Of a DNA stretch of 64,000 bases, positions 12,206 to 50,050 are shown piece after piece. Every line of letters starts with the position of its first letter. The first letter of the stretch is position 1. A program made the position numbers and the translations under genes. The notes below the pieces were generated by a model. The model was not told where the DNA came from and did not search any database. It saw only the letters and a list, made by a program, of their open reading frames with translations. The stretch is from Setoptus koraiensis (lineage: Eukaryota; Animalia; Arthropoda), in the NCBI GenBank assembly GCA_048013815.1, contig CM106585.1:6882001-6946000 (forward strand), written 5' to 3'.

Positions 12206-13071
12206 GTGTAAATAGGTGTGTGAAGCGTATCCAAATTGAAGGAGAATTATTAATAAACAACTGATACTAATAATGATGATAATAATACAACTAAAATAGA
12301 GCTATCTAACAGACAGTAGTTTAGCAATGGTCGCTAGGCCAGTTGTATAGTCGGACTGGCGATGAGTAGGAATTATGCTTATTCTTCTTCTTCTACTTCT
12401 TGGCTAGATCGATGATTTAACAGCATCAACTAACAAGTGTAAGTGTGTAAATATTATCACAAAGAGTCTCATCGTAATAAATTGGCTTGTATACTGCGTG
12501 TGTAATCGCACTTGGCCCAAACTTTCTGTGCATCCGCACAATGCATGCTTTTGTGCTTGCACACTTACACTTAACACAGCCCGCAGCGTAACGTGTGCAC
12601 CTTTTCTAGTGGATACTATTCCACAAAGATGTAAATATTATACAGCTTGTCCGCACAATCGCAACCTATTTAGGCACACGCGCCGCATTCACATTCTTCA
12701 GTGTATCAATTCTCGGCACAGAGAGTTTGACACAAGTCCGAATACACCCTGTAGATGCACACACGCGTAATCATAGGTTCTGTACCATCGAAGTGATTCT
12801 AAACGCGAAAACTTGTGATCTATATGGGACGCGCGAACTTCGAAAATATGTGACCCAAAAATTGCACCCATTTTCTGGCTAGATCACAGAACAAACGATA
12901 ATGGATAAAACAAGCTGCCTCACTCGCCCGTTAATTGTTAAGCACGACGATGATAGCGAATCTATCTTTATCTTTCAACCTGGTTTATTGTTGTTTTCTA
13001 TAAAATGAGATATATATTGTAAAGTTTGTTCCAAGGAATGGGTCGCTATCATGAACACATGATGAAAACTT

Positions 13072-14716
13072 TTAGAGTTCGACATGGGCCTTCTCAACCC
13101 CACTCCTGTCGTAGCCGGACAATTCGTCAGTGGCGTGCTCAGCAACGTATTTAAGTAGATCACTGATGTCGCGACCTCCCTCATATTTGCGCGGAGTCTT
13201 TGTATCTTTTGGATACCAGTAGATTGTGGGGAATCCATGAACAACAAAAGCAGAAGGATAGTCGTTTGCTGTGGCATCGAGCTTGGCGATAGTAACACCT
13301 GATTCACCTTTAAGCTTGTTTCCTAGTTCCTCCCAAGTTGGTGCCAACGATTTACAATGACCACACCATGGGGCGTAAAACTCGATGAAAACATCTTTGT
13401 CGGCTTTAGTGACCAATTCGTCAAAGTTCTTTCCAACAGCAGTCTTCACTGCGGCATTCTCTTGGTCCTCAGGCAAGTCTTCTGATTTCATGAATGGCTC
13501 TAGTTTACCGTCTAAGAAATCTTTGACAAATTTGGTGAAAGTGTCCACTGAGAATTTTTCCTTAAGGGCGAATTTCTTACCATCCTTATCAACGGCAGCA
13601 ACGAAGGGAGGTAGATCCTTAGTTGAGCGCGGCATTTCGAAACCAAACTCTACCAATTCTTGGCCGAATTGTGCAACATTTGATATGGCAAAATTGACAC
13701 CTTGATCTTTGTAGTTGGTGGCCACTTTGAGAACACGATTGCGCCAGTAGTGGGTGCCTTTAGGATTCTTTTCGTAATCAATTTCAAAGTAGGCTACAAC
13801 ATAAGGCTGAACAACTTCGGCAACATTGGCCATTGTTCTGTAAGCTAATAGTCCGTGTAAGTTCTCAGTGACAAAGTCGGAGATTTCATCGCTACCATCA
13901 TATACGACATAGTCTGGCTCGAATTTGCTCCTGAAGTAAGAGGCTCTTGCGAGTACCACACCTGGTAGGGTGACGGACTTGTCATCTTTGAAGGCAGAGC
14001 ATTTTTCATTGAATTTGTCAGTGGCCTTGTCAGCAAACACATGAACAAATTTAGCTTGATCACGGAGCTTGTTGGCAGCCTTCTGGAATTTAGCGCTCAA
14101 TTCGTCGGAGGAGCTTTCAAACAAACCAAATACAATTGTCTCCTTGGATTTCTCGTAAAGTTTTTGTAACTTGTCAAAGCTGTCATACTCCTTGGAGGCT
14201 GGTCCAGCAATGGAGCGCATCTTTTTCACTATGCCATCTGCGTCGCGAGGACCATCGTAGTCTGTTGCTTCGCCTGATCTAAATATCTTGAGAGTTGGGT
14301 AACCGTTGACGCCGTTTTCCTGGCATATCTCTTTACCATTGTCCGAGGTACAGTCTACCTTGGCCAAAGGTACGGGGGGGTCTTCGTTTTTGAGTGTGGC
14401 AGCCGCAGTTTCGTATTCTGGAGCCAACCTATAGTAGTAAGCAAATGAAAACAATAGTTGTTAGTGAATTAGTGAACATTGTCGGCTTATAATTGTTAAC
14501 TACTGGGTATTTGAGTTAGTGCGATGATGAAATAGCCTACCTTTTGCAGTGTCCACACCACGGGGCAAAGAATTCAACCAGAATCAGATCCTCGGCGTCA
14601 ACTTTTGACTTGAACGAGTCTGTGTCGAGGCTGGACAAATCTAGAACAGATTCAGCCGATGCCTGGATGCAGAGCAGGGCTAACAGAGTGGAGGATATTG
14701 TCAACGCTTTAATCAT
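13072..14716 (-). CDS. PDIA3: Protein disulfide-isomerase A3 (ERp57/ERp60), 510 aa; exons 14716-14541 and 14428-13072
   Basis: Exon 1 gives a signal peptide and EFFAPWCGHCK. A phase-2 intron (GTAGGC..TAG) leads to RLAPEY. Second motif EFYAPWCGHCK, YWRNRVL, and C-terminal HVEL. Confidence 0.95.
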
Positions 14717-17154
14717 GATGACAAATCTTTAGGTGTACTAACAATAATTAGTTATAAGTAGATTTAGATGACACACAATAATAAATAGTTATCTAGTGGC
14801 CTAGTGTGGGTTTTAGCGTCGCCGAGTCGATATGGAAGAGTAATTACTGTAAATATATGTAAATTTTGATAGACTTGTTAAGTATGAGGTGTCGGGCGAT
14901 AAGACAGACAAAGACACCGCACAACATGGGCAGAGCAGCAGTGGACGGTGCAGCCGAAAGTGCAGAGTCTGTACAGAGTGATGAATCACTATTGAAGCAC
15001 TGTGTACTTGTGCACCGGTTGTGGCATCTACCTCTAAGAAGACTTGAAGCTGTTTGCAGACGTGCAGGATGCGCGAAATTCAAACCAATTTGGCATTGTC
15101 ACAAGCATTGAATTGCTAATTAAGGCTGCAGACTGAAACAATCCCGATAAGGCGACTGTCACTTTTGGTGCAGCATTGCATCTGTGGGGGCAGGGCAACA
15201 TTTGAACTTTTGATTTTGAAGCAAGTGCCAGCCGACTGGATTAGCAAGAAAGTAACAAGATTTTGCGATAAGTTGCTGGCACTGGCTTTACTTTCGTTTT
15301 GTTCATTCAAGCCATTTCACTATTCAAGCTCGCCCCGTATGCACACACGACGACCATTGCTGCCAACTTTTACGAGATTTTCAACTCACAGCTGTTTCTT
15401 GCTTGATTGCCTATATGGTGAAATGATGCTTCATTCGTAGCGAATTTTGTTACGAATGATTTGTTTTATTGCTTGCTCCATCGAACACATACAGGCCGTC
15501 ATGTTTCTCCCCGGAGCCGAGCCAATCCACAACAGAGCTCAATGAAGCTGCGCGACTTGTTGAGTCACATTAAAATCTCAAGTTCACCGTGTGTCAGAAG
15601 AGTTTCCGACTGTTGAAAATACAGTGCCAGTCTTAGCGCATGAGCTGTCTCGCAAGCAGACATTGGGCATTGCATGTGTAAAACTGTCGGAATATTGTTC
15701 GATTAGTGGCTGTGACATAAACGCTACCTTGTCTCCATCGCGACATCTTATCGGCCAGTTTTATATTTAGTTGTTTTGCTGGCTTCTCGTTCGAGCCAAC
15801 TCTATAGCTCACTTCGGCGCCCCCAGGGGGGTTCCTGTCATCGTCGAATCTATCCAACAACGACTTGCGGGCACATTATCGGGCGGATATTGTCAGCCTC
15901 CCCAACGAGAAGAGAGTCCATGCAAAGACGTTGCTGGCGAGCCAACACTGATCAGACAAAGAACAAAACCGATCGGCCGGACGGAGGGAGAAGTGGCGCA
16001 GCGAGAACCGCTCGGGCAACAGACCCATAGTGCACGACACGCCTTCTTTGTCGAGCACAAACTGTGCAAAAGTGGGTGTATCGCGGTGAGTGAGTAAGTG
16101 TGTGTGTGTGTGTGCGTGTGAAACCCGGCAACAAGACAGGCGGTGAGAAGGCTTCGAAAACGAAATTAATTTAAAACAAAACATCGTCAACGCAGCCACT
16201 GGTGCCTCGATAAATATTATTAAATGGAAATATAATACCGATTGCTTACTTAATTCCTATTAATACTGTGAGATTTCTGTTGTCCCCAATATCACAGCCG
16301 GCATTGTCAACAACATGGTGCAAAAGACGATGACAAACATGAGATAAATGGGAGGAGGATGAAGATGAGCGTCGAGAAGAACGATGGTAAGCGAAAATCG
16401 GATGATACTTACTGGATAAATGGGACACGCGCATGAGACAGATAGCAAGCTCTGTATCACTTTATTGTCACCCAGCTGAGACACCATTGATATATCGCCA
16501 ACAAACAGCACCACAAATAACGAATATATAAAATCATAGAGAGACTCAATATTCATCATCGCTCGCGAATCACAGTGGCTGCTGTTTCATTGTTTCATTA
16601 ATTCATTAATACATCATCATTATCACCACTTAGTTTAGCTCATTTAGCGATAATTATCTACGTCATTATTCAGCATACACATATTTATATATTGTGGTGT
16701 TATTGAGCCTTACTGTTGATGTGTGCTTATTGTTGAGCTTTCACTGTTATTGGCCAGCAACAATGCAAATTAAGTGAAATTATATTCTGTCCAAAAATTC
16801 ATTGCGCCACTACTTGAGCATATTAGACACATTGCACCATGTATCAGCCATGTAAAACTAACATCTGATTCGACATAGGACATTATCATACACACACTCG
16901 CACACACAATATTATTACTCTTGTGACAACCAAGCCGCCACAACCATAGAGGACTCTATTCATTTTTATTTATTTCATTTAATTTCGCTATACAACAACA
17001 TTTTACGACACTCAATATTAATATTACGGCTTTGTCGTTAACTCTAACGCCTCACCAACAAAGAGCTGTGGCCACCAATCTCAAGTCGAACTTACTTGTC
17101 AGTCCAAAATCAGCTCACCACCACCAAAAATAAGCTTCAAACAACTTCAGAAAG

Positions 17155-31960: not shown

Positions 31961-32853
31961 AGCTGACGTTTCCTGTGGGTAATCAGCGCGTGCGGCAATA
32001 AATATTGTTACCAATGGGCTAGATTGTTTTCTTCACGCGAGCTGTGACGTTTAGATGTGTTTATTTTCCATCGACGTATGGTAAACAAATCCAAATTGGA
32101 TCTGCAAGTGGTTTTGGCTTCATTGCGCATTCATATCACATGGAGCGGCCAAGAGAATAGTTTCTACTAACATTATTTAACAATCACAAAGTAAAGTGAT
32201 GATAACAAAAAGAGTCTCTCGGAGTGGTCGGCTTACTTGCGGATCATACGACCGGAATGGGGACTCCAGCCGACTGCTACCATTAGATACTGGCGACTTT
32301 TTTTGTGTTCACCGTCGGCCCGAATGCAATTACATGAGCTTCTTCGTGTCAGACATGCTTCAGCCGGGTGCTCAATTTCATCACTATGGTGCTTAAAAGG
32401 GCCCATGAGGCAGGATTATCGCCCTATGTTTATTGCGACTGGATGAACTTTTGCGCATGTGATTTTTATTGGTGACTTCACCAAGAGCACACTGTATCGA
32501 CAAAGATTACACCTAATCATTTGTCACTCGTTGCAAAAAAACAATGGTCACATACTCGCTAATAAAATAAAATCATTAAGATCGCAACGTTAGTAGCCTG
32601 CAATCAATTCGTAACTATTAATCACTCGTTACTATATATAAAATCGACATAAACCACCGTTCGAACAATAGGAAAAGGATTAAAGATTTATTGCGTATGA
32701 AGGCGACGACCAAGCAGTTTTGTTGAAATCGAAATTTGTCCTAGTTCCCTACAAATGTTAGACTATCGATTGTGAGTAATTATAATTCAATTATTGCGAA
32801 GCTGATCATCGCACTTTCAATATTCGGCTTCGAATTTCTTGAAAGAGAGAAAG

Positions 32854-32861
32854 TATTTAAA
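32854..32861 (+). promoter_or_regulatory. TATA-like box TATTTAAA of peptide gene 1; the same motif is at 37548 and 39980 for genes 2 and 3
   Basis: Conserved GTATTTAAACTC 141-154 nt upstream of the ATG in all three paralogues. Confidence 0.55.
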
Positions 32862-32998
32862 CTCTCTGTTCTACTCTCTGATACCATTAGTCAATAACTG
32901 AACTAACAATCAGCATCAAATAAATAAGCAGTTGTCATTTATCGTATAACATAACTCGCAAGACACAAAACCATCCGACCGGACGTAACTAATAGAAC

Positions 32999-33193
32999 AT
33001 GATGAATAATTCTTTCGTTGTATGTCTCTGCTTGTTCGCTTTCCTCCTGGTAGCCACACCGGATATAATACAACCATGCTATGGACAAGATCTTACTGGA
33101 GGACTTAACAGACTTATAGAGACTCTTCTTAACTCTATAGATGAGGCACAAGTACAAACAATCAATGGCGTACAAGCGCTAGGACGCAAATAG
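32999..33193 (+). CDS. Small secreted peptide precursor, copy 1 (64 aa)
   Basis: Signal peptide MMNNSFVVCLCLFAFLLVATPDIIQPCYG shared with two paralogues, conserved leader DNA, and C-terminal GRK. Confidence 0.8.
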   Translation: MMNNSFVVCLCLFAFLLVATPDIIQPCYGQDLTGGLNRLIETLLNSIDEAQVQTINGVQALGRK

Positions 33194-33462
33194 TCCATCT
33201 CTGATCAATCATCAGCTGACCAACTAGCAACGAAATGGTTCGTCACAGACGCGAAAGATCTACAAATATACATACGCATATATGACGGAACTACTCTTAG
33301 ATTTGGCCGGCTAAATATGAAATAAAAAACACAACTAGGTTGTAGCAGAATCAAGATTGAAGATTGAAAATTAATGAGAGTGAGTCTGCGACTGGGGGCC
33401 AATTCAATTCTGTTGGATTCTGTCGGATGTGTTCTGTTCTGTTGCTTCTCTCGATACATTTC

Positions 33463-34445
33463 ATGGGTGTTCTTGCGATTAGGTCCCCACTCAGATTTCG
33501 ATGAAACTTCACACATGGGTCCCGTAGGGGCCCCATATCATGGAATGAGTAGACCGGAAGCCAGGAAACCTCCGGTTCCGGAGTTACTAAAAGATTGAGA
33601 TAGAGCTTTGAAAATTCATAATCGGATAGATGACGCCTAGCGGAGCACGATGAAATCAAAATTAATCTTCTGCCACTTCCGGTTACCTAGATATAGCTGT
33701 TTAACGCAAAAAAGGGTGTGGCCGGGCCCTGTGCGGTCGCGATGAGCGGACCCATCCTGTGCCTCGTGCGCGCAACACCCTGTATCCATGTCTGTTTCGG
33801 TCATTTTAACCCTGAATATCAACGAATTAGTGTGATAATAAAATTTGAGATGAAAATTATTACAACAAATGGATGGATAAAGTGTCCTGGTGTAGCATTC
33901 ATCTCATTATGTCTCCAATCCAGTTGTTCCTACTTGTCTCATCCTTATTTTTCATTCCCCCCTTCATTTGTGTATGGATTGCAGTCATGTGAGCGGAGGG
34001 TAGAGGGCGCAGCCCGATACCCGAAGCGCTCATCAACCCTACCCGAAGGGTTCCCGTCGCACGCAGTCGTCGCGGTAGCGACGACGGAGATGTTACGGCC
34101 TCCAGCGTACGAGGCCGCAGGCCGAGTTCTCAGACACACCGCATGTGCATCCCTGAGCGCAGCGAAGCAATAATTTGGTCACTTCCGGTATTCTAGACCC
34201 AGTAATATCTCTATATCTCGGAAACCGGAAGTCGCACAGAGCTGAAAATTATGTCATCGTGTTTAGCGTAGCTTGAAACGTCTGTGTAGTGAATTTCAGA
34301 GCTCTAGCTTTAACTTTATGTAAAACCGGAACCGGAAGTTTCCTGGCTTCCGGACCACTTTTTTCGTCTTAGTTAGGTCAGAATAGACCTATACCGGAAG
34401 TTTCATCAAGATCCGGTTGGGGACCTAATCGCTAGAACAACCCAT
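33463..34445. mobile_element. Foldback/MITE-like element with long imperfect inverted arms (about 33463-33696 and 34211-34445)
   Basis: ATGGGTGTTCTTGCGATTAGGTCCCC versus GGGGACCTAATCGCTAGAACAACCCAT. ACCGGAAGCCAGGAAACCTCCGGTTCCGG versus CCGGAACCGGAAGTTTCCTGGCTTCCGG. It interrupts the homology between peptide repeat units. No TSD identified. Confidence 0.6.
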
Positions 34446-35530
34446 TTCATAATTTGAAATTTGAAGGAATAAATTCAAATTATCAGGGAGCGGAGACAAA
34501 TGAAATTCCAACTCAAGAGGTGAGCTGCGCGATCCTCACAGACCAAATTGTTTCGCTTTTCACCTAGACAGGGATTTTGTCATCCTTACTCACAGCGGCA
34601 ATCATGACCGTTTATGATCGACAGTTGGCTTGATATGTAGTCACATCTAGGCAACCCATATCGGCTCTGTTTGGACCTGGGTGGTCAATTTTCGCCAGCT
34701 TATGATTCATGACAGCTCGGTGTTGGCTCGTTCTGGCAATTAGAGGTGCGCTCGGATATCCACGGCGGATATCCGATCTGTTTTGAAAAAGATTTCGGGT
34801 GTTGTTCGGAATACGTACCAAGCCCAATTTCCTTCAAACTTCACACATGAGCCCCGAAGGGGCCCCAAAGAACAAATAAAGTGGTCCGGGAGCGCGGAAA
34901 TTTCTACTTCCGGAGATATAGAAAAATGCCTTTTTCGGGTCTCAGAGGGGCCTCAGATTTCAAATTTTTGTATGATCGTCTAGATCCAGATGCTATCTAT
35001 GTGAAAGCGTTGAGATAAATCTTTTACATCAACTCGTTCGCGAGCTATTCCACAATAAGTGCACGTCACACTTCCGGTTCTAAAACTGATTCGGCTGTAC
35101 TACCAACTAGTTACGGTCTCTAAAGCAAGTTCACACCCTATATGAAAGAAACCCGGCCCGATCACGGGCCCCGCCCATTCGACTCCCAGTCCTCGGGAAG
35201 AATCTTTTTTAGTTTGGTGGCCGTCAGTCGTCCCGCCGGAGGCTTCATGTTGACTTGCCATTGACAGATAACCGGCTTAATTGATCATTTGTATCACTTC
35301 AAGAGTGATAATTATGTTTGAACGTCATCTAGTGCTTGTATAATATGCTAAACTAACTTGTCAAGCATGCTATTGACACAGATCAATGCCTAGAGTGACA
35401 CCAATCTATGCAAAAGAGAGCTAATTTAGCTTTGGAACATGTTAGTCCAACAAGTTTGCACACGAGCATGAGTGAAAAAATGGCGCAAAATTTTGTGCAA
35501 CATTACTATTCAATACTATTGTATGCGACT

Positions 35531-35635
35531 ATTGTAATGTATTTATACTAAATTGTAATGTATTTATACTAAATTGTAATGTATTTATACTGAATTGTAA
35601 TGTATTTATACTAAATTGTAATGTATTTATGCTAA
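35531..35635. repeat. Tandem repeat, 5 x 21 bp (ATTGTAATGTATTTATACTAA), enclosed by a 19-bp inverted repeat (35526-35544 / 35634-35652)
   Basis: Read directly. Units start at 35531, 35552, 35573, 35594 and 35615. Confidence 0.95.
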
Positions 35636-35640
35636 ATACA

Positions 35641-35904
35641 TTACAATAGTCGTACTACAAATTGTTGTAGTGCTTCGATCGCAGCAACCTGTAATCGGTA
35701 TCCACGAAATTTTTCGTTTTCTTGAAAAACTTCTCTAACTAACTTGAGGGAGTCCTTCCTTGGGATCTCAATGTTTGTCGTATTTTCGAGATATTGGATT
35801 TTTTTTAGGAATAGTTTCTTCCATCTACGATCTAGCCTTTCTGCCATTTCTTTTCTTGTTTCGGTTCTAGAGGTTGACATTTTTGCTGTTTTCGGTCTAA
35901 CCAT
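35641..35904 (-). CDS. Highly divergent, C-terminally truncated histone H3-like protein (87 aa) with Met at the K9-equivalent position; may be a pseudogene
   Basis: ATG in an ACCATGG context. [21 protein letters not shown] aligns to [65 protein letters not shown] aligns to [43 protein letters not shown]. Confidence 0.75.
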   Translation of the reverse strand: [87 protein letters not shown]

Positions 35905-35958
35905 GGTTGTTAAAAATGATTTTCTTTGTTGATAATGTAATAATATACTAATATATCT

Positions 35959-36564
35959 ATGATAGTGTGTATAATATAATGTGGTGGATACGATGTTTCT
36001 TCGATTCGACGGGAGAGAAGACGACAACAACAAGACGATCCTGACAGATATCGGAACGAAACAAATCGTCATGGTCTTGTTGTTCGAATAAGACTCAGAC
36101 CATCATGTCCAGAATGTCGTCATGACATCAAAGCTGTTTATTCTTTGAGTCTAGAAGAAGTCGAGCCCGATCCTGAGTTAGAATTGGGGCAGAACGAGCT
36201 ACAAGAACAGGGGCAAGTAGAGCCACAACAGGTGCAAGAAGAACATCAACGGGTGCAAGAAGAGTATCAACATGCGCAAGTTGAGCGCCAAGAACGAGCT
36301 CAAGAAGAGATAGCAAACCAAGAAGAAGAGATTCGAAACCAACAAGATAGGATTGAGCAACAACGAGATGGTCGTCCACATTCGGTAGTGATCTTGGAGT
36401 CGCTTGGAAGAGGTATAAGCATAAAACATCTCACCCGATTCTCTGACAACAGTGAGAGATGGATGCCGAAATCCTTGATTGAGACCAGCGAAGCCTGGGC
36501 CGAATGGCAACGGACCAGAGGCCAAAGAAACATGAGACATCACCGAGCGAGGAATCAAAATTGA
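35959..36564 (+). CDS. Half-RING (CPECR) / E-Q-rich coiled coil / chromodomain-like ORF; ATG 35959 is followed by an in-frame TAA at 35977 and the frame is then open 35980-36564; possibly decaying
   Basis: The track ORF 36145-36564 extends upstream in frame through RPSCPECRHDIKAVYSL. The C-terminal VVILESLGRGISIKHLTRFSDNSERWMPKSLIETSEAWAEWQ resembles a chromodomain. AATAAA motifs near 36644-36664. Confidence 0.5.
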
Positions 36565-37688
36565 TGTCGAAAACAAACAACGACAACAACAAATTAATGT
36601 GCACAACAAACAACACCACCAATTAATGTCAACAACAACAAAAAATAAAAACTGTATTAATAAACTAACATATTGTGTCGTCTTTTCTTTTTATTCCTAT
36701 TTAATTCCTATCTCGACGCTAACATTCTCCCGACGCTAACCAACTGTATCTCGACGATTACATTCTGCCAACGCTGACATAGTTTCGACGCTGACATAAT
36801 CCGTGGATATTCATCTGTTTTCACGGATATGCATGGATATCCGTGATTTTTTCTAAAATTTTCGATCCGTCCGTGGATAATCCGCGCTTAAATTTTGCGA
36901 TCCGAGTCCGCCGCGGACGGAATTTTTACGGGTAATTCGCGGATTCGGATCGGATCGCGCATCTCTACTGGCGATACAACCAAATCAACTTCTAAACGTT
37001 TCTTCACTTGTCAGAGGCTTGTCTCGCTTCACCTGATTGTCTGATCTTATCACTAGGGTACTCAACAGTGTTAATGGGACAGGATTATAGTATGTTTATT
37101 GCGATGAAAAAAATGCTTGCACAAATGATCTTTAATTGCACCTTCACCCTTCACTGTATCAATAAAGATTGCACCTACTTATTTGTCACTCGTTGTAAAA
37201 GCAACTGTCACATGCTCTCTGACAAAATGAAAGTGATTAAGATGGCCAAACAATAGCCTGCATGCAATTGATACCTTCCATAAATTCGGCACAAACAAGC
37301 GAATTATATCTAGTTTACTCATGTGACCATTGTGTGGCGCTTTGAAATTGAAAGTTTTCAACAGTCGAAAAAGGATTAGATTTATTACATATGCGGGCGG
37401 CAGGCACCAAGTTTTACTTTAATCGGGGTTTGTCATAAATCCCAACAAATGTTCGACTATCAATTGTAAGTAATTAAAAATCATTTATTGTGACACTGAT
37501 TGTCGCAGTCTCAATATTCGATTCAGAGTTTCTCGATGGATAGAAGGTATTTAAACTCTCTGTTTTACTCTCTGGCGCCATCAGTCAATAACTTACCTAA
37601 CAAGTGTAATCAGCTTCAAATAAGTCATTTATCGAATAACATAACTCGCAAGACACAAAACCATCCAACCGGCCGTATCTATCCGAAC

Positions 37689-37889
37689 ATGATGAATAAA
37701 ACGATTGTAGGTCTTTTCTTGTTCGCTTTGCTCCTGATCGCAACACCCAATTTGATACAACCATGCCTTGGGCAAGGACTCGATGAAGGAATAATTCCGG
37801 GTTCATCGGCTCTTATTGATGCTTTACTGAATGCAACGGAACAAGAATTGGATAATAGTCTCGCTGGTCCATCCGGTATGATCGGTTGA
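37689..37889 (+). CDS. Small secreted peptide precursor, copy 2 (66 aa)
   Basis: True start is the ATG at 37689 inside track ORF 37500-37889. Signal peptide MMNKTIVGLFLFALLLIATPNLIQPCLG, and C-terminal Gly. Confidence 0.8.
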   Translation: MMNKTIVGLFLFALLLIATPNLIQPCLGQGLDEGIIPGSSALIDALLNATEQELDNSLAGPSGMIG

Positions 37890-38521
37890 TCGGATAATCA
37901 ACTCGCAACAAGATGCTTCTAGCCGTAAAAGATCTATATCCTACAACAACTCTTAAAATTTGCTTGCTGAACACAAAATAAACAACAAAACCATGTTCTA
38001 GCAGAATCAAGATGGAAGATAGGAAATGAGCGAGAGCGACTTTGCGACTGGAGGCCAATTTGATTGTGTTAGATTGTTGATGTCAACTAATGTCAAAATG
38101 ATAACAGAACCATAAATAGTAAGAAAACGAATCATAGGATGAAAGTTTTGCTTTTGTGGCGTCTTATTGTTCGTCTAATTAGCTTCATATATGCGCCGCA
38201 ACAAGACTACCCCGTTAGTGTCCGGCGGCAACGATGCGAGCAACTACAGCCAGAGTGAGTCTCAGAGTTACGTAACGCGATCGTCTTATGATGGATCTTG
38301 ACAGATAGAAATATCACGAATGCATATTTTGCACATATTTGCACAACGGCTGAATAATAAATTCTCGAGTGCGTCTGCATGATATGATAAGATCGCAAAT
38401 GAAACATGTTTTGGCACAATATCTAATGATTGATAATAATTTACACTATATTTAGCGGTTATAAAACTACAAAAGTTGCACAAGTGCACAAAAATGAATG
38501 AAATTGAAATAGGAATAGGAA

Positions 38522-39363
38522 TCAACCGCGATCACTGCTGCTGGTCACTTCCGGTTGCTCGCAACACAACTCCAGACGCCACAGGCTGAAGCTGCCGTCA
38601 CTGCCTGAGCTAACGAAATGCCTGTCGTCGCTCAAGAATCTCACCACCACGGCCGGTTGCGACGAGTATCGTCTCTCGTAGAAGCCCATAGTTTTTGACC
38701 GACACGGGTACCTGAACAGGCGCAAGTGTCCGTTACCGTCGCTGGCCACGACCAGTTTTTTGTTGTTTGATACATGACAGCTCATGTTGACCACGGTGAG
38801 CTGGTGTTGTTGTTTGTCTGCTGTTGTCGCTTGAAATCGGTTGTTGCTGTCGCTTAAATTGAGATTGTCGTTGTCCCAAATAGCGCGAACATTCTCACTG
38901 GCCGAGCATGTCGCATTGAACCATTCGATGTCCTGGGGTATTTTGCTCTTTTTCATGTACCGGAAATTGCACAAATCCCAGAGAATGAGCTCTTGGTAGT
39001 TGTTGTTGTTGATGGAGGTCAAAATGAACTGATTGTTGTCGCTGAACTGCAGACTCACCACCGGATACGGGCTCTGATTATATAAGAATGTATTATATTG
39101 TAGATAATTGAAATTGGGAGACGGTCAATTATGAGCGATGGGATCAACGCATCGATAGGGGCACATATTGACATACATTTGTCATTATATTATCATTATT
39201 CATTGTCAGGATATTCTCACAATCTCAATTATCAAATATATGCGAAAATATTTTGGGGCTTACTCACCTGGAATATGGACACCTTCTTGTAGGCGCGGCC
39301 CTGCTCGTACACGGTCAACACAAATATGCTTCCGTTTGCACATCCGGCCGCCAGCAACGAGCC
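38522..39363 (-). pseudogene. Partial duplicate of the DCX-EMAP 3' end: 96 nt of the penultimate exon (39363-39268), the intron, and the complete last exon (39073-38522)
   Basis: The last exon is nearly identical to 41219-41770 (EVTSSSDRG versus EVIGSSDRG). Homology stops abruptly after CCAGCAACGAGCCG at 39363. Confidence 0.8.
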
Positions 39364-39398
39364 GAAAAAAGCATCAACCAATAATCTTCAACGATAAA

Positions 39399-39969: not shown

Positions 39970-40133
39970 AGAGAGATAGTATTTAAACTCACTGTTCTAC
40001 TGCCAGGTACCATTAGTCAATAACTGATCTAACAAGTGTAATCAGCTTCGAAGAAACAAGTATTTGTCATTTATAGCAAGACATAACTCGCAAGACACGA
40101 AACCATCCAACCGGCCGTAACTAACAAAACAAA

Positions 40134-40361
40134 ATGAATAATTCCTCTATTGTATGTCTTTGCCTGTTCGCGTTGCTCTTGATAGCAACACCGGCTATAA
40201 TACGACCATGCTTTGGACAACAAGATCTTTCTATGGGACTTGGAACCATTGTAAGACCTATTGTAAACGCAATCGAAGAGGGTGTGACGGACGCCCTTGA
40301 CCCGACAGAAATAATGGAGGCGGACTTCGCAGGATTGAGGTTTGCGAACGGGAGGAACTAA
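40134..40361 (+). CDS. Small secreted peptide precursor, copy 3 (75 aa)
   Basis: Signal peptide MNNSSIVCLCLFALLLIATPAIIRPCFG, conserved leader DNA, and C-terminal GRN. Confidence 0.8.
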   Translation: MNNSSIVCLCLFALLLIATPAIIRPCFGQQDLSMGLGTIVRPIVNAIEEGVTDALDPTEIMEADFAGLRFANGRN

Positions 40362-41218
40362 TTCAACAGTTAATCAACAGTTAGGACAAGATTGTTCTCA
40401 TCAGACCTTGAAAGATCTGTATGCGGGAAGGTTTCTTAGAATTGACCTGGTGAATATGAAACAAACAAAACAACTATGTTTCAGCGAAATCAGTATGGAA
40501 GATTGGAGATAAACAAGAGCGAGTTTGCAACTTGAAGCCAATTCAATTGTGTTAGATTGTTGCTGAAAACGAATGTCAAAATGAATCAATAAACATTGAG
40601 GAAAAGAATTATAAAACGAAAGTCTTGCTTTTGCAGAGTATTCTCGTTTGTTTACTGTCGGTAATCACATTGCTGGCAATTGATAGGCCCCATTTAGATT
40701 GAGTTTGGTGCTGCAGTTTATTGTTTATCGTTGAAGATTATTGGTTGATGCTTTTTTCATCTACTTCTCTTCTCATTCACTCGATTGGCCTTCGTCTACT
40801 CAGCTGTCCTGCGTCGAAAACGCAAGCAACTACATGGCTAACTCACTGTCAGCTGATCTGCAAAAAGGACGAACAACAACTAGGGCAATTGTTTGGCCAC
40901 TCATGCAGCTCAAAGGGAGCTTGAGACACAATTGGTCTGGGGGCCCCTTTTCAGAGTGAGTCTTACAACACAGCGCGCGATGCAAGACGAAAGAAGCCGC
41001 GAGCAAGATTGTTGACTAATACAAATATCACAATTACATATTTTGCACATATTTGCTCATTGGTTAAATAATCAATTCTTCAGCGCATTGTATGATGATA
41101 TGGTCACATATGAAACAAAGTTATGCATTGGCACGATAACAATTTACACTATATTTAGCGGTTATAAAACTACAAAAGTTGCACAAGTGCACAAAAATGA
41201 ATGAAATTGAAATAGGAA

Positions 41219-44200
41219 TCAACCGCGATCACTGCTGCCGATCACTTCCGGTTGCTCGCAACACAACTCCAGACGCCACAGGCTGAAGCTGCCGTCACTG
41301 CCTGAGCTAACGAAATGCCTGTCGTCGCTCAAGAATCTCACCACCACGGCCGGTTGCGACGAGTATCGTCTCTCGTAGAAGCCCATAGTTTTTGACCGAC
41401 ACGGGTACCTGAACAGGCGCAAGTGTCCGTTACCGTCGCTGGCCACGACCAGTTTTTTGTTGTTTGATACATGACAGCTCATGTTGACCACGGTGAGCTG
41501 GTGTTGTTGTTTGTCTGCTGTTGTCGCTTGAAATCGGTTGTTGCTGTCGCTTAAATTGAGATTGTCGTTGTCCCAAATAGCGCGAACATTCTCACTGGCC
41601 GAGCATGTCGCATTGAACCATTCGATGTCCTGGGGTATTTTGCTCTTTTTCATGTACCGGAAATTGCACAAATCCCAGAGAATGAGCTCTTGGTAGTTGT
41701 TGTTGTTGATGGAGGTCAAAATGAACTGATTGTTGTCGCTGAACTGCAGACTCACCACCGGATACGGGCTCTGATTATATATGAATATATTATATTGCGG
41801 ATAATCGAAATTGGGAGACGGTCAATAATGAGCGAGCGAATCAGCGCATCGATACAGGCACATATTTGTCAGTATACATATATTATCATTATTTGTCAGT
41901 GTGCGTATATTATCATTATTTGTCGGGATATTCTCACTATCTCAATTATCAAATATATTGCGAAAATATCTTGGGGGTTACTCACCTGGAATATGGACAC
42001 CTTCTTGTAGGCGCGGCCCTGCTCGTACACGGGCAACACAAATATGCTTCCGTTTGCGCATCCGGCCGCCAGCAACGAGCCGTCGCGCGAATACTCCAGA
42101 CATCCAATGCAGACCGGCGTCAACGGGAAATAGCTGCACAGCGACCCGTCCGACGTCTGAATGATGTAGACGGTGCCGTCGAGCGAGCCCGACGCTATCA
42201 CCTGGCCGCCGCAATGTATCGCAATGGTGCTGCACTCGGACGGTATGAGTGCCGTCCACACCAGTTGTCGGGCCGACCATTTGCAGATTTTGCGGTCCCG
42301 CGAACAAGTGAAATATCCGTCCGCAATGACGGGATCGGGCACCAGGTCGGCGACAAGTGTCTCATGGCCCTCGTAAACGACACAATAGTCGCTTTGTTTG
42401 CTCGCCCGAAGCACGTCGCCCACAAGTATGACGTTGCGCGTTGTGGCCACATACACCCGCATGCTGGCGGGGGGCGCGTTACTGTCTCCAGAAGTCTCCC
42501 TGTCCAATGTGCCGCTACAACAGTTTGCCGGCCTCGTAGCGGCCGATATTATGCAACAAATGGCCCCCATTTCCTCGGGCAAGCGAACAGCGTTGACGCA
42601 CCGGTAACTGGCGCCCTGTATCTGACTGGCGGCCGAGGTGTGATCCGTGCGCTTGCCCGAAGCGGTGGTCGCTAGCGACCATGTGCGCAAGGTTCCGCTT
42701 GCGTCGCCCGTCATCATGACACTATCGCCCACCACTAGAATGCAGCTTATTGGGGCCATTCGACCGGTTTCTGGCCCGCCCACCATTCGACCGGTTTCTG
42801 GCGGGCCGCCCACCAATTGATCGGTGAGCGTGCCGATGGTGTCGGTGGCGGTGTGCGCCGTGAGCAACTGCTGGCCGCTCGCAACAAAACTGACCACCTT
42901 GTATGTGACCGTGGCATGCGGTTGTGCCCTGGCAAACGGGCCGGCCTTGGACGGGCTAGAGCCGGCCGGCACGGACGTCTTAGCGGGACTTGGGGGCGAC
43001 ACAGTGGACGATTGGGTCCACACGCTGACTCGCCCGTCCTGGGCACCGACGAGGTATTTGTCCGGGCCGACACAGGCCACACAGTTGGCCTGGGCGAGGC
43101 TGTTGAGATTGAGGCGCGTTAGCACGCTCAACGACACCAGTTTGCTTTGTTTGTAGTCGATTTGCCACAGGCTCAAATGGCGTCGCCCGAACGTTACCAA
43201 ATGATGCTCGCGATACGGATGTAGCAACACCTGAAGTACCTGTTCGCCGCGGCTCAGAATCTTGGTCACCTTTATCGAGCTGACGGGCACGGGCGGCGGC
43301 TTGGCGGGCGCACTTGTGGTTGCCGGTGTCGGGTTGCTCTGGCCGGTCTCTGTCGGGCCGGTTGCGGCGCGCTGCCCGAGCAAATCGGACAGTGGCCAGT
43401 GGAACAGGTAGAGCGCTAAATGATGTATGTCGCGACTGGCCACCGCCAATTGTGTGACGCTAAGCGACAAACTGAACAGCTGGGCGCCCAAAAACGATTT
43501 TTCGCTTATTGTCATGAGGGTGGTCAGAGTGTCTATGCACCAAACGTGAATTTGGGGTCGCCTGTTCAATTGATCCTCTACCTGGCCACTGGCCGCAATC
43601 CTCGCCTGCGCGCTACACGCCCACGCGGACGGCGGGCCGGCGGCCGAATCCGCATCGAGCCCGTGCGCCCAATCTACCTGTTGACAGCTGCTGGTCAGCT
43701 GTTGCTGGCTGTCAGACGCTAAATGGGGGGCGCTGCCTGCTGTCACATTGGCCGCTGGACATTTGACAACTGTCAGACAACAAACGTCGCTAGTGTGCGC
43801 ACTGTAGTAGCGCTGGCTGTTCTTAGAGCGATTCCACAATATCACCAGCGCCCCTATAGGATAAATCAATTCGTTGTCGGCAAAATGGAGCCAATTTGAG
43901 TAGCGCTCGTTTGGCTCAAACAAGCTACTCGCTGGCCAAATACTGCTGCCCCCTGTTTTGGGTGTGTTCAACTTGCTCGCCCTATAAGCAGAGCCTGTAT
44001 TTATTCCACTTCCGCTTCCGGTCGCATCTCCCATCTCAAGCCATCTCTGCTGTTGCTGTTGGTCCGCTGCCAAATTGTGGGCCAAATGCGGGGCCGGCCG
44101 CCAGTCGTCGTTGATGCAAAAGCCGTGCACCCATTGCAGGCTGAAATTTTGGTCGGGAATTGTGTCGCCCTGACACGCGAATCCTTTAACCTCGCGCGCC

Positions 44201-47200
44201 AACTGAGTTAAGGTCTGGCTGGCACCGGAAGTGATGCTCGCTTTGCGCCAGTTTGTCTCAAGTCCGGATACAATTTGCACTTTGTCTCTGTCTTGTTCGT
44301 GGCCACTGTCATCCGCCAGTTGACGTTGTTCAACTGCGATCAATTGCTGCGACCTTTGGCTCGCTGCGGTCAGATGTGCGCCACCGTCGGTCTCACCCGC
44401 ACCCGACGCGTCACCGCTCGCTGCGCTCCGCGTTTCCGGTCTGTCATACGGCCGCACTTGGTTGCGTTCGATTCTGACAGTGTTGTCGTCAGCGGCTGCA
44501 GACGCGTGCCCGCCCCTCTGAGGGGGCTTGTCATGGGTCACGGGAGAGGTCAGAGTCACAATGTTTCGCACTCGTTCGTTTGCCATATTCTGACTCACCA
44601 CACTCTCGCTGGGAATCTGTTTTCGGGAATATTTGCCGCTCCTGCCTTCGGTTGCACCGGCCCGGCTCTTTGCCGGACTCTGCCCGGATCCCGTCGTGGG
44701 CGCCGCCTTTTGCCTGGCGTTGGCAGGCTGTCTGGCGCGCGTGGGTTGTCTCTGCCTTGTGCTTGCACCCGTACTGACCGTCCCGACCGTCCCGACCGTA
44801 TCGCCTTGTTGGGCTTGGTTGGGGGTGTGGTGGACGAAGCGGTCGCTGGCCAGTTCGTTCACCTGTCGCATCTCGCTGTCGGACAATTGTTGCTCGCTCA
44901 CTGTTATAATGGACTCGTTGGACTTGGTGCGCTCCATTGGAAAGCGCACCGGCAGGTCAACCAGGTAGCCCTGCAGCGATCGATTGGTGCCTATCTCGAT
45001 CGATTTGTTAGTGGCGGCGGTCGCCATTTGGCCCGTACGCTGGGCGCCCGCTCGGGCAGTTCGCTGGCCTGCGCCATGGCGTGCTGGCTGTCTCGCTGTG
45101 CCGTGATTGTTGGCCGCGACGGCCAGCACCCTGCAATGCGTATCCGGCTCGGGTGGCAGTTGTCGCTGAGTGGACACAACGACAAGATCTTCCTTGAAGG
45201 TCACTCTGGGTTGAACGCGCGTCTCCGAGCTACTGCGCACCAGAGCCCGGCTCCTCGTGTCACTTCCGGTTATTCTTGCGGGGCTCAGTTGCTGGCCCTG
45301 TCTAGTATTGGCTGCGAATTCATCGTTTGTCACACACAAAAGTGTCTCGTCTACTGACGCTCGCGCCATTGCTTGCGACGGGCGCCCGCTGTTACAGTGA
45401 TTGGCGCTTGCCAGACATTTGGGCGCCCTCGAGGCGCTCACAAGCTCCAATTGAGGAGCGGACACCATACGAATCAGCTTAGGGTCCCTCTTTCTCACCG
45501 TTGTCGTCTTATCCGCTGCAGCGCCAACAACTAAACTCGCTCTCCGTTGCTGCCGATTGTTTTCTTGTCTCGGGTCCAACTTGCCGGCCGTGCATAAATG
45601 GCCGCCGGCCGTCTGCGACTGTCTGTTCGAGTGATCGGCCGGGCCGGCCGGCACCTTTGACGGGCTCGTTTGGCGGGCCCTGGCCTTGGCCGTGCGCTGT
45701 TGAGATGGACTTTTCGCTTGCATGCTTTGCTTGATGGGTCTCACTGGCGACCTCTGCGTGGGCGATTTGCCCTTGGCCGGGCTGCTCTTGTTGTCGAGCT
45801 TGCTGTCAAGCTTGCTGTGACTCGATGCCGCGAGTGACGAGTCACGACTTTTTACCGCCGGGCCGCCGCTGCAGCCTATGGTGCTGGCCGAGTGGGGCGC
45901 TGTGTGGAGAACTGGACGAATATAATCACTTCTGTCTGGTCTAACCTCAAATTTGGCCAACTCTATAGGCGAAACCGGCGACTTTATCTGGCTGCTTCTG
46001 GCCAATGACGGCTGCTGCTGCTGCTGTTGCTGTTGTGACGGCTTCGGTTCCCTTTGGTCCGTTTCATCCGGTGACTTATGCGCCGGCGACGGCTTGGCAG
46101 TGCCGTTGTTGTTGATGTTGTTGTTGTCTAGATCACTGAGCGCTGTCCGCGGCGACTCCGGCCGTTCGCCTATGTTGTTGCAGGGTGTCTGCGTCGACAG
46201 GTCGCTCGTCGGGCCCGCAATTAGCGGGCCGTCGACGAGGAAATTCTTGCAAGTGTCCAGTTCCTGTTGCAACTGGGCACAATTTAGAACGCGCCTCAGA
46301 TCGTCGGTGTACAATTTGCACACCAGCGCCATACCGATGGCGCCCGCAAATTCGGCCAGCAATTGCTCGAACGACGATTGCTTGCTGGCCACGTATTGCC
46401 TATTTAACCAAATGTTGGCCTTCCTTTTAGGATTGTGATAATCAATTATGCATATTTGCACCGTTGCCACCGTTGTCTGTTGTTTGTCTTTATTATTAAT
46501 TGTCTCGCTGGCATTGGCATGATCGTCGCCCCCATGATTCCGTTTGGCCAGTCGCCTCAGCACACTGGCCTCCTGGCGACATGCTAGTTCCTCACCTGTT
46601 CGCTTGCTGCCAACTTGCTGCTGCTGCTGATGATGCTGATGGTACAACGGTGACACGGAACAGGTCGTCATTTCCGGTGTGAGGGGGCCCGCCGTGTAAG
46701 TGTGAGTGACGGGCGACCGTTGGCCAGCGCCGTTGGCGTTGGGCGCCATTGCGGCCACGCCAATGAGATAATTTGATTGAAAATCAAAGTAGCGCGTTCC
46801 CGAGACAATGTAGATGGCGTTGTGTTGTAACTCGCTCACACTATACAACAATTGACCCTCGTTGTTAAACAAATATCTTGCGCCGCCTTGAATAATGAGC
46901 CGGCCATTTATGTAGTCCAACAGGCGATTCAGATCAACAAATTCGTTGTCGCGCAAACTGATACGAAGCGGCTTCTCAAACGGAAGTCCGTTGCTGTAAA
47001 TGGTCAATATTTTGGCCCGATGGAGCGTGTCGCGTGACCGGCTCATTCTGGCGCTGCTCGCGCCACCTGACAATGGCGGCAGCAATTGTTGCTGCTGCGG
47101 CAAGCCGCCAAAACCCACCAGCGGTTTGCCCGACCGGTAGCTGGCAGTCGGTGCGGTCTGCGTCAAATTGGAGTAGCTACCGCCGAGTCGCTTCCGGTTG

Positions 47201-48675
47201 CTCGTAAGTCTGCTCTGCTGGCAGCTTGTGCTGGCTGTTAAATGGGGCAAATTTGGCCTCTCGTCTGGCCTTGCCTGCCCAGATTCCCGTCCGATGCTGT
47301 CGCGGCTGTTATTCAGGCAACTCCAGTTGGCATAATCGCGATTCAGGTCCACATACAACAGATCGTTATAGTTCAAGTTGGTGCTGCTGTCGTTCAGACA
47401 GCAACTTGATAAACTCTGGCGCCTGTTGTTGGCGTCCCACGCCACTAATACCGGCCCGCTTGAGCGTGTGTGTCCGGCCCCGGCCCGGGCAATCTGACTG
47501 TGCCCCGTCGAGTCGCCGGTGAAATTGCTGACAGCTCGCTGAGGCCTGTTGACAACTGTGGGCAATGTTGTCAGTTCACTATTTCTCTTTCTGGTTAACT
47601 GGGTCGCCGTCGGGCTAACTCTGTGCCAATCTGTCGCGTTATTGTTGGCATGCTGGCCGTCGTTAATTAGCGCCCTGTCACTATCGCTGTCACTATCACC
47701 TGTCGTCCGGTATTTGTGGGCTTTCGCTCTAATGGTGGGCGATTTTGATCTAGTTTCGCTGCATTTGTTGCGTTGTGACTGTGACTTGTTGTGTATTTTC
47801 GATGCTCTGTTTTTTCGTCGCTTCGATTTGGTCGTCGTTTTAGTTGCGCTCAACGAGTTGCAGCCACAAGTGTGAAGCTTCAGGTCACTGTCGGTGATAA
47901 TTTGGTCTGATTGGTGGTGCCCATGGCCGGCATGGCTGCCACAACTGCTGCTTGCTGTGGAATCACTGGGCAAACTGAGGAAGAATCCGTTATTCTTATC
48001 CGTGTCATTGTCGCTGGTGGCCGCTATCAGCGCAGCTCTCTTATTATCCGCCTGTCTCAATTGTCTCCGATTTTTCGCCTTCTTCTTGATCGTCTTTCTC
48101 ACCGGGCCACCACTGAGCTCTTGTTTACAACTATTACAATTGGTATTAGTATTATTATTTTTTCTACTATTGGCCGAGGGCGACAACAAAAGCTTGCTCG
48201 GTCTGGCCAGTGGCTCGTGCTCTGACACGCCACCCTTGTGATAGTCTATTTGTGCCAATGTTCTGTCGCCAATATGAAAATATCTGATGGCCTCCCTGTC
48301 TAGAATGTCGTCGTTTGAGTCGTCACTTGTTTGTCTGTCGTTGTTGTTGTTGTCGCTGTTTGGGTCACTGTTGTTGTTGCTGCTTCTGCCGATAGTCTTG
48401 GCAAATTTTTGCTGCTTGTCAGTTGTCTTTACCGCTACTGCTGCTGCTGCTGATACATTAGCTGCTCGTGTATAATCTTTGCTGGCGGCTGGATAAAATG
48501 TCTGATATCGTTCGCTCATCGACGATTTTCTTCGCGCCAATTGTGGCGAACGCGACTGATCGATTGTGACAGGTTGCTGCTGCTGCTGACACATGTCTGA
48601 GGCCCGATGTTTTGACTGGGCCACGAGTGACAACTGGTCGCCATGGCAAACAAAGGGCCCATTGTCATTGTCCAT
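41219..48675 (-). CDS. DCX-EMAP: Doublecortin-domain echinoderm microtubule-associated protein-like (DCX-EMAP), 2413 aa; exons 48675-41986 and 41770-41219
   Basis: First ATG at 48675. Two DCX-like domains (RAKILTIYSNG...GARYLFNNEGQLL and VQICIID...LVCKLYTDDLRRV), a HELP motif (FSLQWVHGF), WD40 repeats, and an EML-type end GHLRLFRYPC...VRFLSDD. A phase-0 GTGAGT..CAG intron gives 7242 nt in frame. Confidence 0.85.
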
Positions 48676-50050
48676 TGTTGTTATTGTTGTCGCTATACGC
48701 AAATAGGCTATGGCACAAATAAAGTTGCTGCTATCAATCTATTCGTCTAGTCGTCGTCTGATAGTCACAATAGTATCACTGTCCGTCTGTCTATAATTAC
48801 TTGTCATCTCTTGTAAGGGTTGTTTGCAAACAATGGAGCCCCTTCTCAATTGGTGCACCTTTACTTTGGCACTGGTGCTGTTGCTGCTGCGGTCGCTCAC
48901 ATAAACTCTTGTATTATCACTCAGATCGTACAATAAATTGCTGACTAGTTAACAGAGACTCAAGTAGTAAAAAAAGTCAACTCTCCCTCTAGCGAATTGC
49001 GTAACGCGTAACAGACATACAAGCGAGCGGGTTCAGATATGACATTTGCGAATACGACACCATAGACAGAGATAGAGACACCGGACAGAGAGGCCATTGG
49101 CTTTTCGACGTGGTCAACCGTTAACGGTGAATTTATTCAGAGCGCCAGCGAGGTTCACAGACAGCGCAGCGTAGAGTTTATTCAGTTTTATATTTATATA
49201 TATAATATTTATATAATTTTGTATGACATACACAGACACATGGATCCCCTTTTGGGGCGTGCCGGAATAAACAGCAACGGACAGCAAACTAGAGGAAAAA
49301 ACTAAAAATATTCATTGCGCACAATTGGCTCAAAAAAATGGTTACCTGACGTTAGCTGCGCTGGCGCGCGCTTACGTAACAACCAACGACACGGGCACAC
49401 AAATAACAAAACAAATGGTCGGTGGCAATTAGTGGCCCCCCACACCACACACACAACTCACACTCAACTGGACACTGTGGAGTGGAGTTAGTTAAAAGTT
49501 GATAGCGGTAGTGGTGACCGACCACTACTAATAACCACTTACTATATGGTGCCATGATTATTACTATATGTTAATCACTTGCCCGCGGGTTAATTACTTG
49601 GCCCAAAATGTGCGTGCCTCTCCCTCTTTTACCTGACTTGTGCGGTAACCTGGTGGCGGTAACTGAATACCGAGTGAATACTACCACACTGAACAGGCTG
49701 AAAACTCCTACGCTTTTCCCCTGCGCCACGCTACTTATTATATCATGTGGCTGTATCACCGGTAGATATCTGCTAGTGATATGGTCAGTTGATATAAAAT
49801 GCTCGTGATATTTAAACGCCGCCATCGCCGCTATGCGCCACCATCATCACAATTAGTGGTGCACTATTAATGGCAAGCTAGATGGCGAGCTGGCTGGCTG
49901 CTACTGCTGATGCTGTTGTTGTTGTTGGTCGTGGTGTGGGCCGAATAATCATTGCGACCGCAATGGGGACCTAGTTACCGATGCGCCGCCATGATATTGT
50001 TTCGCCCGCCGAATCAACCACTGCCAGCGAGCCCAGCCGGGACAGACAAA

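Follow-up and report, generated by a model that had tools for sequence, protein, structure and literature searches.

The minus-strand open reading frame (ORF) at positions 35641-35904 of the window (the whole stretch of 64,000 nucleotides of Setoptus koraiensis DNA that was analysed) is probably a truncated fragment of an H3-family gene, carried as inert cargo by a Pack-type non-autonomous hAT element, its A-(R/K)-M-S motif, with methionine at the place of H3 Lys9, being copied passively. The ORF encodes 87 amino acids, from the ATG at 35904 to the TAA at 35643-35641, and its start context, AACAACCATGG (ACCATGG), has an A at -3 and a G at +4; the 87-aa ORF with a strong Kozak context of the original prediction was therefore confirmed, with a start that is optimal. 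Upstream of this ATG, 56 more codons were found without a stop, and that extension resembles nothing. The ORF, its carrier element and the other features of this region were as follows:

34733-34740, plus strand: left 8-bp target-site duplication (TSD), CTGGCAAT, present in one copy in empty-site contigs
34741-36967, unstranded: non-autonomous hAT-type element of 2,227 bp without a transposase ORF, delimited by its terminal inverted repeats (TIRs), the 8-bp TSD and the empty site
34741-34751, plus strand: left TIR, TAGAGGTGCGC, followed by GGATATCC(G) subterminal motifs; 10/11 against the right end
34755-35309, unstranded: very abundant repeat within the left part of the element (summed contig word depth 13,000-43,000)
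35526-35652, unstranded: palindromic array of 127 bp, with 5.1 copies of a 21-bp unit (35531-35637) and 28-nt inverted arms
35641-35904, minus strand: H3-like ORF, 87 aa, with a tail (1-21), an alphaN-like segment, alpha1, a long L1 and half of alpha2
35878-35880, minus strand: ATG at the position aligned with H3 Lys9 (codon 9) in the tail alignment; the same in the sister contig that spans it
35881-35883, minus strand: codon 8, AAA (Lys) in the window and AGA (Arg) in sister copies, from contig variants
35905-36144, unstranded: AT-rich spacer separating two head-to-head ORFs; TATA-like runs lie 45-75 nt before the ATG (from a reading of the sequence only)
36145-36564, plus strand: 139-codon ORF, rich in Gln/Glu and containing 21-bp repeats; faint chromodomain likeness over the C-terminal ~60 residues
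36957-36967, minus strand: right TIR, reverse complement TAGAGATGCGC, which pairs with the left end
36968-36975, plus strand: right 8-bp TSD, CTGGCGAT, 7/8 identical to the left copy

Similarity of the ORF to the H3 Family

Comparison of the ORF with the Pfam Histone profile (PF00125) revealed a match between ORF residues 8-83 and profile positions 15-87 of 122, with an E value of 4e-4 and a score of 21 bits that falls below the curated cut-off of 26.4 bits. A phmmer search against PDB sequences gave 29 weak matches (E 0.02 to 5). The top one was an unrelated Cas protein (E 0.022), and 26 of the 29 were H3, H3 variants, Cse4 or H3/CENP-A chimeras, all of these 26 being aligned in one register (query residues 30-83 with H3 residues 45-97). 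In a protein-language-model search, histone clusters accounted for 63 of 100 neighbours, the best score being 0.90 with 185 shared features, and a CENP-A cluster was among the top neighbours. In addition, the H3-specific stretch I-x-K-x-x-x-x-x-L-V-R-E-(I/V) is preserved in the ORF. Since the Pfam, PDB and language-model evidence is weak but concordant, we consider it very probable that the ORF, now far diverged, originated from an H3-family gene.

A single-sequence AlphaFold model of the ORF (pLDDT 68) had residues 1-13 disordered and helices at residues 14-43, 49-62 and 69-86; these three predicted helices follow the order expected for alphaN, alpha1 and alpha2. Foldseek comparison of this model with the PDB retrieved no histone and nothing significant, a partial three-helix model obtained without an alignment being a poor probe. 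Closer relatives were searched for in several collections: a word-index protein search with the ORF gave zero matches, an exhaustive phmmer search of 1.84 billion representative proteins yielded neither an H3 at E <= 0.001 nor any closer relative (two repetitive unrelated proteins only), and a metagenome scan gave 371 pattern matches, 0 of which were confirmed. The 87-aa, 143-aa and 139-aa products and one neighbouring gene were also looked up exactly, and none is on record.

In an alignment to an H3 chain, L1 of the ORF exceeds that of H3 by two residues, and a longer L1 is characteristic of CenH3; the best PDB alignment also leaves alpha2 some four residues short. The original prediction had held that the homology of the tail argues against CENP-A, a point left unsettled by this longer L1. 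Both an H3.3-like and a CenH3-like ancestry would fit the sequence of the ORF.

The coding character of the ORF was assessed against eight host genes of the window, whose codon usage served as reference. The ORF gave a per-codon log-likelihood of +0.10, within the range of host genes (in-frame host windows, mean 0.18, sd 0.08; off-frame, mean -0.27), and only 1.3% of local non-genic windows attain this value, which is partly due to the mere absence of stops. Because host-like codon usage is combined with 87 open codons at ~25-30% identity to H3, the codon record says that the H3-like sequence evolved, by all appearances, as protein-coding for most of its divergence. That coding evolution could have taken place in a host H3 variant before capture, or within the element.

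The N-Terminal Tail and the Position of H3 Lys9

When the tail was aligned with that of H3, numbering of the ORF from Met1 coincided with H3 numbering. ORF residues 5-21 align without gaps to H3 residues 5-21, with 7/17 identical (T6, A7, S10, T11, R17, K18 and A21), and the ATG of codon 9 lies at 35880-35878. The target lysine within the recognition motif A-R-K-S is thereby replaced by methionine, as A-K-M-S in the window copy and A-R-M-S in sister copies. This agreed with the H3-like tail carrying Met at the K9 position that had been predicted; the prediction that the K27/K36 part is gone was also correct, the K27-K36 stretch being missing from the ORF.

The local alignment of the tail had a score of 33, which shuffles of the same 21 residues reached in 0.4% of cases (p = 0.004). 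The window has 322 Met-started frames of 60 codons or more, and this score was the highest among them. The H3 tail used as query matches the peptide given in PMC5030085. With residues 1-30 as query against PDB sequences, H3 was not retrieved and a dystonin peptide was the best match. Since the tail alone fails to find H3 in this unbiased PDB search, its similarity to H3 is best regarded as real but modest. It gains weight mainly from its position, exactly N-terminal, in H3 numbering and upstream of the fold.

The Carrier Element and Its Empty Site

The TIRs of the element are 11 bp long, TAGAG(G/A)TGCGC, with 10/11 positions matching, and GGATATCC(G) and CCGTGGATA motifs are found near both ends. 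An 8-bp duplication together with short TAG-type ends is a hAT signature. The description of the ORF as transposon-borne was borne out, as it lies inside a hAT-type element that is bounded by TIRs and TSD and whose empty site is present in the reads. The left-end 21-mer has a single occurrence in the window, and a second copy of the ends was not found within the window.

In all four public runs, which represent at most three samples, contigs connect 34740 directly with 36977 over a single intact target site. The runs that contain the filled site also contain a second, more diverged empty haplotype, with a joint from 34740 to 37033 and without ~40 bp of flank (36993-37032). Summed depths of the empty forms equalled or exceeded that of the unique interior, for example 59 + 282 versus 106 in run X1 and 78 + 34 versus 22 in run X5; such depths are not copy numbers. 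Flanking paralogous tandem units may contribute to the empty-site depth and complicate depth-based estimates of frequency. Since filled and empty sites are both present in the reads, the insertion is polymorphic or hemizygous, and fairly recent.

Three diverged tandem units flank the element, at 32684-33445, 37378-38101 and 39971-40584 (65-91% identity). The unique interior of the element has a depth of ~105, and the repeat at 34755-35309 reaches 100 to 400 times that value. Copies related to this repeat are located at 33458-33586 and 34315-34442. Considered together, the repeat at 34200-34442 and 34755-35309 attains depths of up to 130,000, versus ~105 for single-copy DNA. This abundant repeat contains CCGGAAGTTTC-type hairpin motifs and lies within the hAT element as well as outside it, the two being oppositely oriented.

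Other Copies of the ORF

Contigs differing from the window span 35814-35976 and carry 35882 T>C (Lys8 to Arg), 35866 T>C (silent) and 35846 A>C (Met20 to Arg), the copies seen being separated by these three substitutions, two of them amino-acid changes and one silent. The Arg8 form (35882 C) accounted for a depth of 282/379 in run X1 and 161/161 in run X2. T-A-R-M-S-T is the commoner state of the family, and residues 6-11 of the experimental H3K9M peptide (PMC5030085) have exactly this sequence.

The sister contig that spans codon 9 differs from the window only at 35846, 35866 and 35882 and by a 7-bp gap; its codon 9 is ATG, and no variant at codon 9 was present among the better-supported variants listed from the run contigs. 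Met9 predates the split of the copies, and the caveat attached to the original prediction, that of a single AAG>ATG change in a dead copy, falls for this reason, the spanning sister contig also having ATG. As to whether the motif is shared across copies, the methionine stood, with ATG in the spanning contig and no variant among those listed, whereas the residue preceding it did not, being Arg8 there and Lys8 in the window.

One sister copy contains a 7-bp deletion at 35852, which leaves 15 shared residues followed by six out-of-frame codons and a stop (codon 22). A joint from 34747 to 36027 corresponds to a derivative of the element that lacks 34748-36026 and, consequently, the ORF. Since this derivative exists, the ORF is dispensable for the element. 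The frameshifted sister copy and the derivative without the ORF give no sign of constraint on the ORF. Two further arrangements were observed: a weaker joint from 34441 to 35658 (side 24) hints at a copy whose residue 83 is followed directly by the abundant repeat, and a contig of 1,977 nt from run X4 matches only 35783-35976, that is, the first 40 codons and the upstream 70 nt.

Truncation of the Fold and the C-Terminus

The histone fold had been predicted to stop midway in alpha2, and the Pfam match indeed runs no further, ending at profile position 87 of 122. The palindromic array, which has a period of 21 with 96% matches and folds as a long hairpin (-36.9 kcal/mol), supplies the final four codons of the ORF together with its stop (35652-35641; R-L-L-stop region). 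Because these codons fall within the repeat array, the C-terminus of the ORF is an accident of the minisatellite/palindrome. The complete alpha1-L1-alpha2-L2-alpha3 fold is absent from the ORF, and likewise the complete CenH3 fold with its L1-alpha2 targeting domain and alpha3; whatever product is made, the predicted chain cannot be a complete histone fold.

Sequences beyond the truncation point were analyzed for remnants of the rest of the fold. Neither half of the ORF taken separately, nor any of the three frames downstream, matched a Pfam family. T-H-A-R-V and P-K...L...G had been considered by eye as downstream vestiges, and they were discarded as unsupported, being out of register by 7 to 11 residues. 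When the array was excised in silico, the frame stayed open for 28 more codons (20 to 28 across options), in which nothing H3-like was found. GT-AG pairs within 450 nt would lead to products of 100-111 aa, none of which restores L2/alpha3. The element contains neither a histone 3' stem-loop nor any other family recognised by an Rfam scan. A search for runs labelled RNA yielded none. In the runs found, which are of unknown kind, no joint resembling a splice crosses the array; these runs behave as DNA, with even cover over intergenic sequence, element ends and empty site.

The Head-to-Head Neighbour ORF

The 139-codon ORF on the other side of the AT-rich spacer was also compared with known proteins. 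Its chromodomain neighbours in the language-model search had values of 0.67-0.73, and its one match against PDB sequences was to the cpSRP43 chromodomains, with E = 1. Its structural model was a low-confidence strand-strand-strand-helix arrangement, with many chromodomains among the non-significant Foldseek matches. The segment encoded around 36370-36530, I-K-H-L-T-R-F-S-D-N-S-E-R-W-M-P, can be aligned with I-E-Y-L-V-K-W-T-D-M-S-D-A-T-W-E-P of cpSRP43, and in this alignment the chromodomain Tyr and Trp of Y-L-V-(K/R)-W correspond to His and Phe. By eye against the HP1 consensus, we take the aromatic-cage positions to be mostly non-aromatic. The homologue search for this ORF found none, and no single chromodomain test was significant. 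The 139-codon ORF may be chromodomain-like at its C-terminus.

Origin and Possible Roles of the H3-Like Cargo

The scenario that we favour is that an H3-family gene already far from canonical H3 would have been captured by a recently mobile non-autonomous hAT element. The captured part would comprise the tail, alphaN, alpha1, L1 and the first half of alpha2, after which the frame would enter the 21-bp minisatellite/palindrome. Because only the stretch from the tail to half of alpha2 is present and the array gives the end, the truncated product would be unable to form a histone fold or to enter a nucleosome. The A-(R/K)-M-S motif would have arisen before the present copies separated and would since have been copied passively with the element. 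We infer both the capture origin and the absence of function of the ORF. A parent gene was not found in the protein libraries, from which the proteins of this genome itself appear to be absent, and this weakens any argument from the lack of relatives. The libraries do include relatives, eriophyoid proteomes among them: the neighbouring protein disulfide isomerase (PDI) is closest to those of Fragariocoptes setiger (67%) and Aceria tosichella (66%), which places the genome among the eriophyoid mites. A match of 94% to the same protein corresponds to a Logan contig (SRR33593474), whose DNA is 82-85% identical to the window. This contig (L001:1491-5606) is colinear with window positions 11185-15163 over the PDI gene and its neighbour, and comes from a related mite.

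Several observations stand against an inert passenger. The frame remains open over 87 codons, its codon usage is like that of host genes and its start context is optimal; the copies seen retain Met9, with T-A-R-M-S-T more common than the Lys8 form; and two chromatin-related cargos in one element would be an odd coincidence, if the neighbour, as it may be, is chromodomain-like. Coincidence could also be invoked for the ORF as a whole, its histone and tail likeness then being a chance resemblance in a Lys/Arg/Glu-rich helical sequence within transposon DNA. The Pfam score under the curated cut-off, the lack of any H3 at E 0.001 in the search of 1.84 billion proteins, the unrelated Cas protein as best PDB match (E 0.022), the failure of Foldseek to find a histone and the better match of the tail alone to a dystonin peptide than to H3 would all be accounted for in this way. 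However, three independent methods led to the same family in a consistent register, the I-x-K-x-x-x-x-x-L-V-R-E-(I/V) stretch is kept, and the tail-like segment is exactly N-terminal, H3-numbered and upstream of the fold, and we consider a chance ORF improbable. We regard as similarly improbable a genuine short H3-variant-like gene with another role (histone chaperone or H4 binding, or a CenH3-derived germline protein) that rides in the element or was exapted from it, and whose 3' part may be spliced. Coding-like codons in a frame left open despite deep divergence, an L1 two residues longer, as in CenH3, and the CENP-A cluster among the top language-model neighbours are in line with such a gene, as are the GT-AG pairs that would lengthen the product to 100-111 aa. 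Nevertheless, no possible splice product restores L2/alpha3 and no such splice joint was present in any run (all of which behave as DNA), one sister copy is frameshifted, and no orthologue was found among the proteins of related mites.

A functional pseudo-substrate appears very unlikely. Here, a putative free Met9 tail would fill the active site of H3K9 methyltransferases, so that heterochromatin would silence the element or its family less; what remains of the histone fold would be only a carrier, and the ORF may be paired head-to-head with a chromodomain-like mini-gene. Such a mechanism would be sound: H3K9M as a free peptide is inhibitory to the Clr4 SET domain in vitro, and its residues 3-12 adopt an ordered state in G9a (PMC5030085), and for this reason entry into the nucleosome would not be required. 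It would also agree with the Met9 common to the copies and the commoner T-A-R-M-S-T form, with the open frame, host-like codon usage and optimal start context, with the recent movement of the element, and with a partner ORF that may be chromodomain-like. On the other hand, position 8 of the window copy is Lys, the frame of one sister copy shifts after codon 15, the ORF is absent from one derivative, and the C-terminus is an accident of the repeat array. No homologue was found in the protein libraries or the metagenome scan, the similarity of the tail is modest (p = 0.004) and the tail alone misses H3 in the PDB, and, at the very low copy number of the element, the benefit would reach other elements too.

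Comparison with Known Systems

Pack-hAT elements with gene fragments have been documented in plants (PMC8903248). The element described here resembles Pack-TYPE elements (Pack-MULE, Pack-CACTA and Pack-hAT; PMC8903248, PMC6379663) in being bounded by TIRs and TSD and lacking a transposase, and also in its low-copy, partly coding-like interior, its truncated gene piece and the variation of interiors between copies. In contrast to the plant Pack-TYPE elements, the host is a mite and we infer the capture, no parent gene having been found in the libraries; moreover, the cargo is far diverged from canonical H3 and not a near-copy of a host gene.

With regard to the methionine, the ORF resembles the H3K9M trans-inhibitors of Clr4/Suv39/G9a (PMC5030085) in having Met at the Lys9 position, the sister motif T-A-R-M-S-T being identical to their residues 6-11. 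H3K9M is an experimental, complete H3 that enters chromatin (PMC5030085), whereas the putative product considered here has a truncated fold. Residues 1-5 of the ORF (V-R-P-K, shorter by one) also differ from those of the H3K9M peptide, as does Lys8 in the window copy. In concept, the ORF is comparable to EZHIP (CXorf67), a natural non-histone inhibitor of PRC2 that resembles K27M (PMC9912509), in having a natural Met-containing pseudo-substrate motif outside the nucleosome. EZHIP is a conserved, expressed host gene that targets PRC2/H3K27, in contrast to an ORF that is lineage-restricted transposon cargo and aligned to K9. Likeness to CenH3/CENP-A/Cse4 lies in a highly diverged H3-family sequence, in an L1 with two additional residues and in the presence of Cse4 and CENP-A among the weak matches. 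CenH3 proteins have a complete fold with the CATD and a tail that is usually unalignable, whereas the ORF is cut in alpha2 and its tail is its most H3-like part.

As the evidence stands, these results describe a cargo-carrying (Pack-like) hAT element in a mite, Pack-TYPE elements having been described in plants (PMC8903248), together with direct read evidence of a polymorphic insertion and a small family of H3-derived fragments with A-R-M-S as the ancestral state. Should the ORF prove to be expressed and active, it would rank as the first K9M-type inhibitor to occur in nature, and as the first case of a transposon encoding a block to the main mark by which transposons are silenced. Such a counter-defence of a transposon against heterochromatin silencing, if true, would be a K9 analogue of EZHIP and would be relevant to the arms race of transposons with heterochromatin.

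Downstream of the element, the window also contains a ~2.7-kb tandem duplication (38298-39364 and 41012-42082, up to 99% identical). It repeats a 179-aa C-terminal beta-propeller piece (ORFs 38522-39061 and 41219-41758), which belongs to a large EML/doublecortin-like gene (main ORF 41896-48702).
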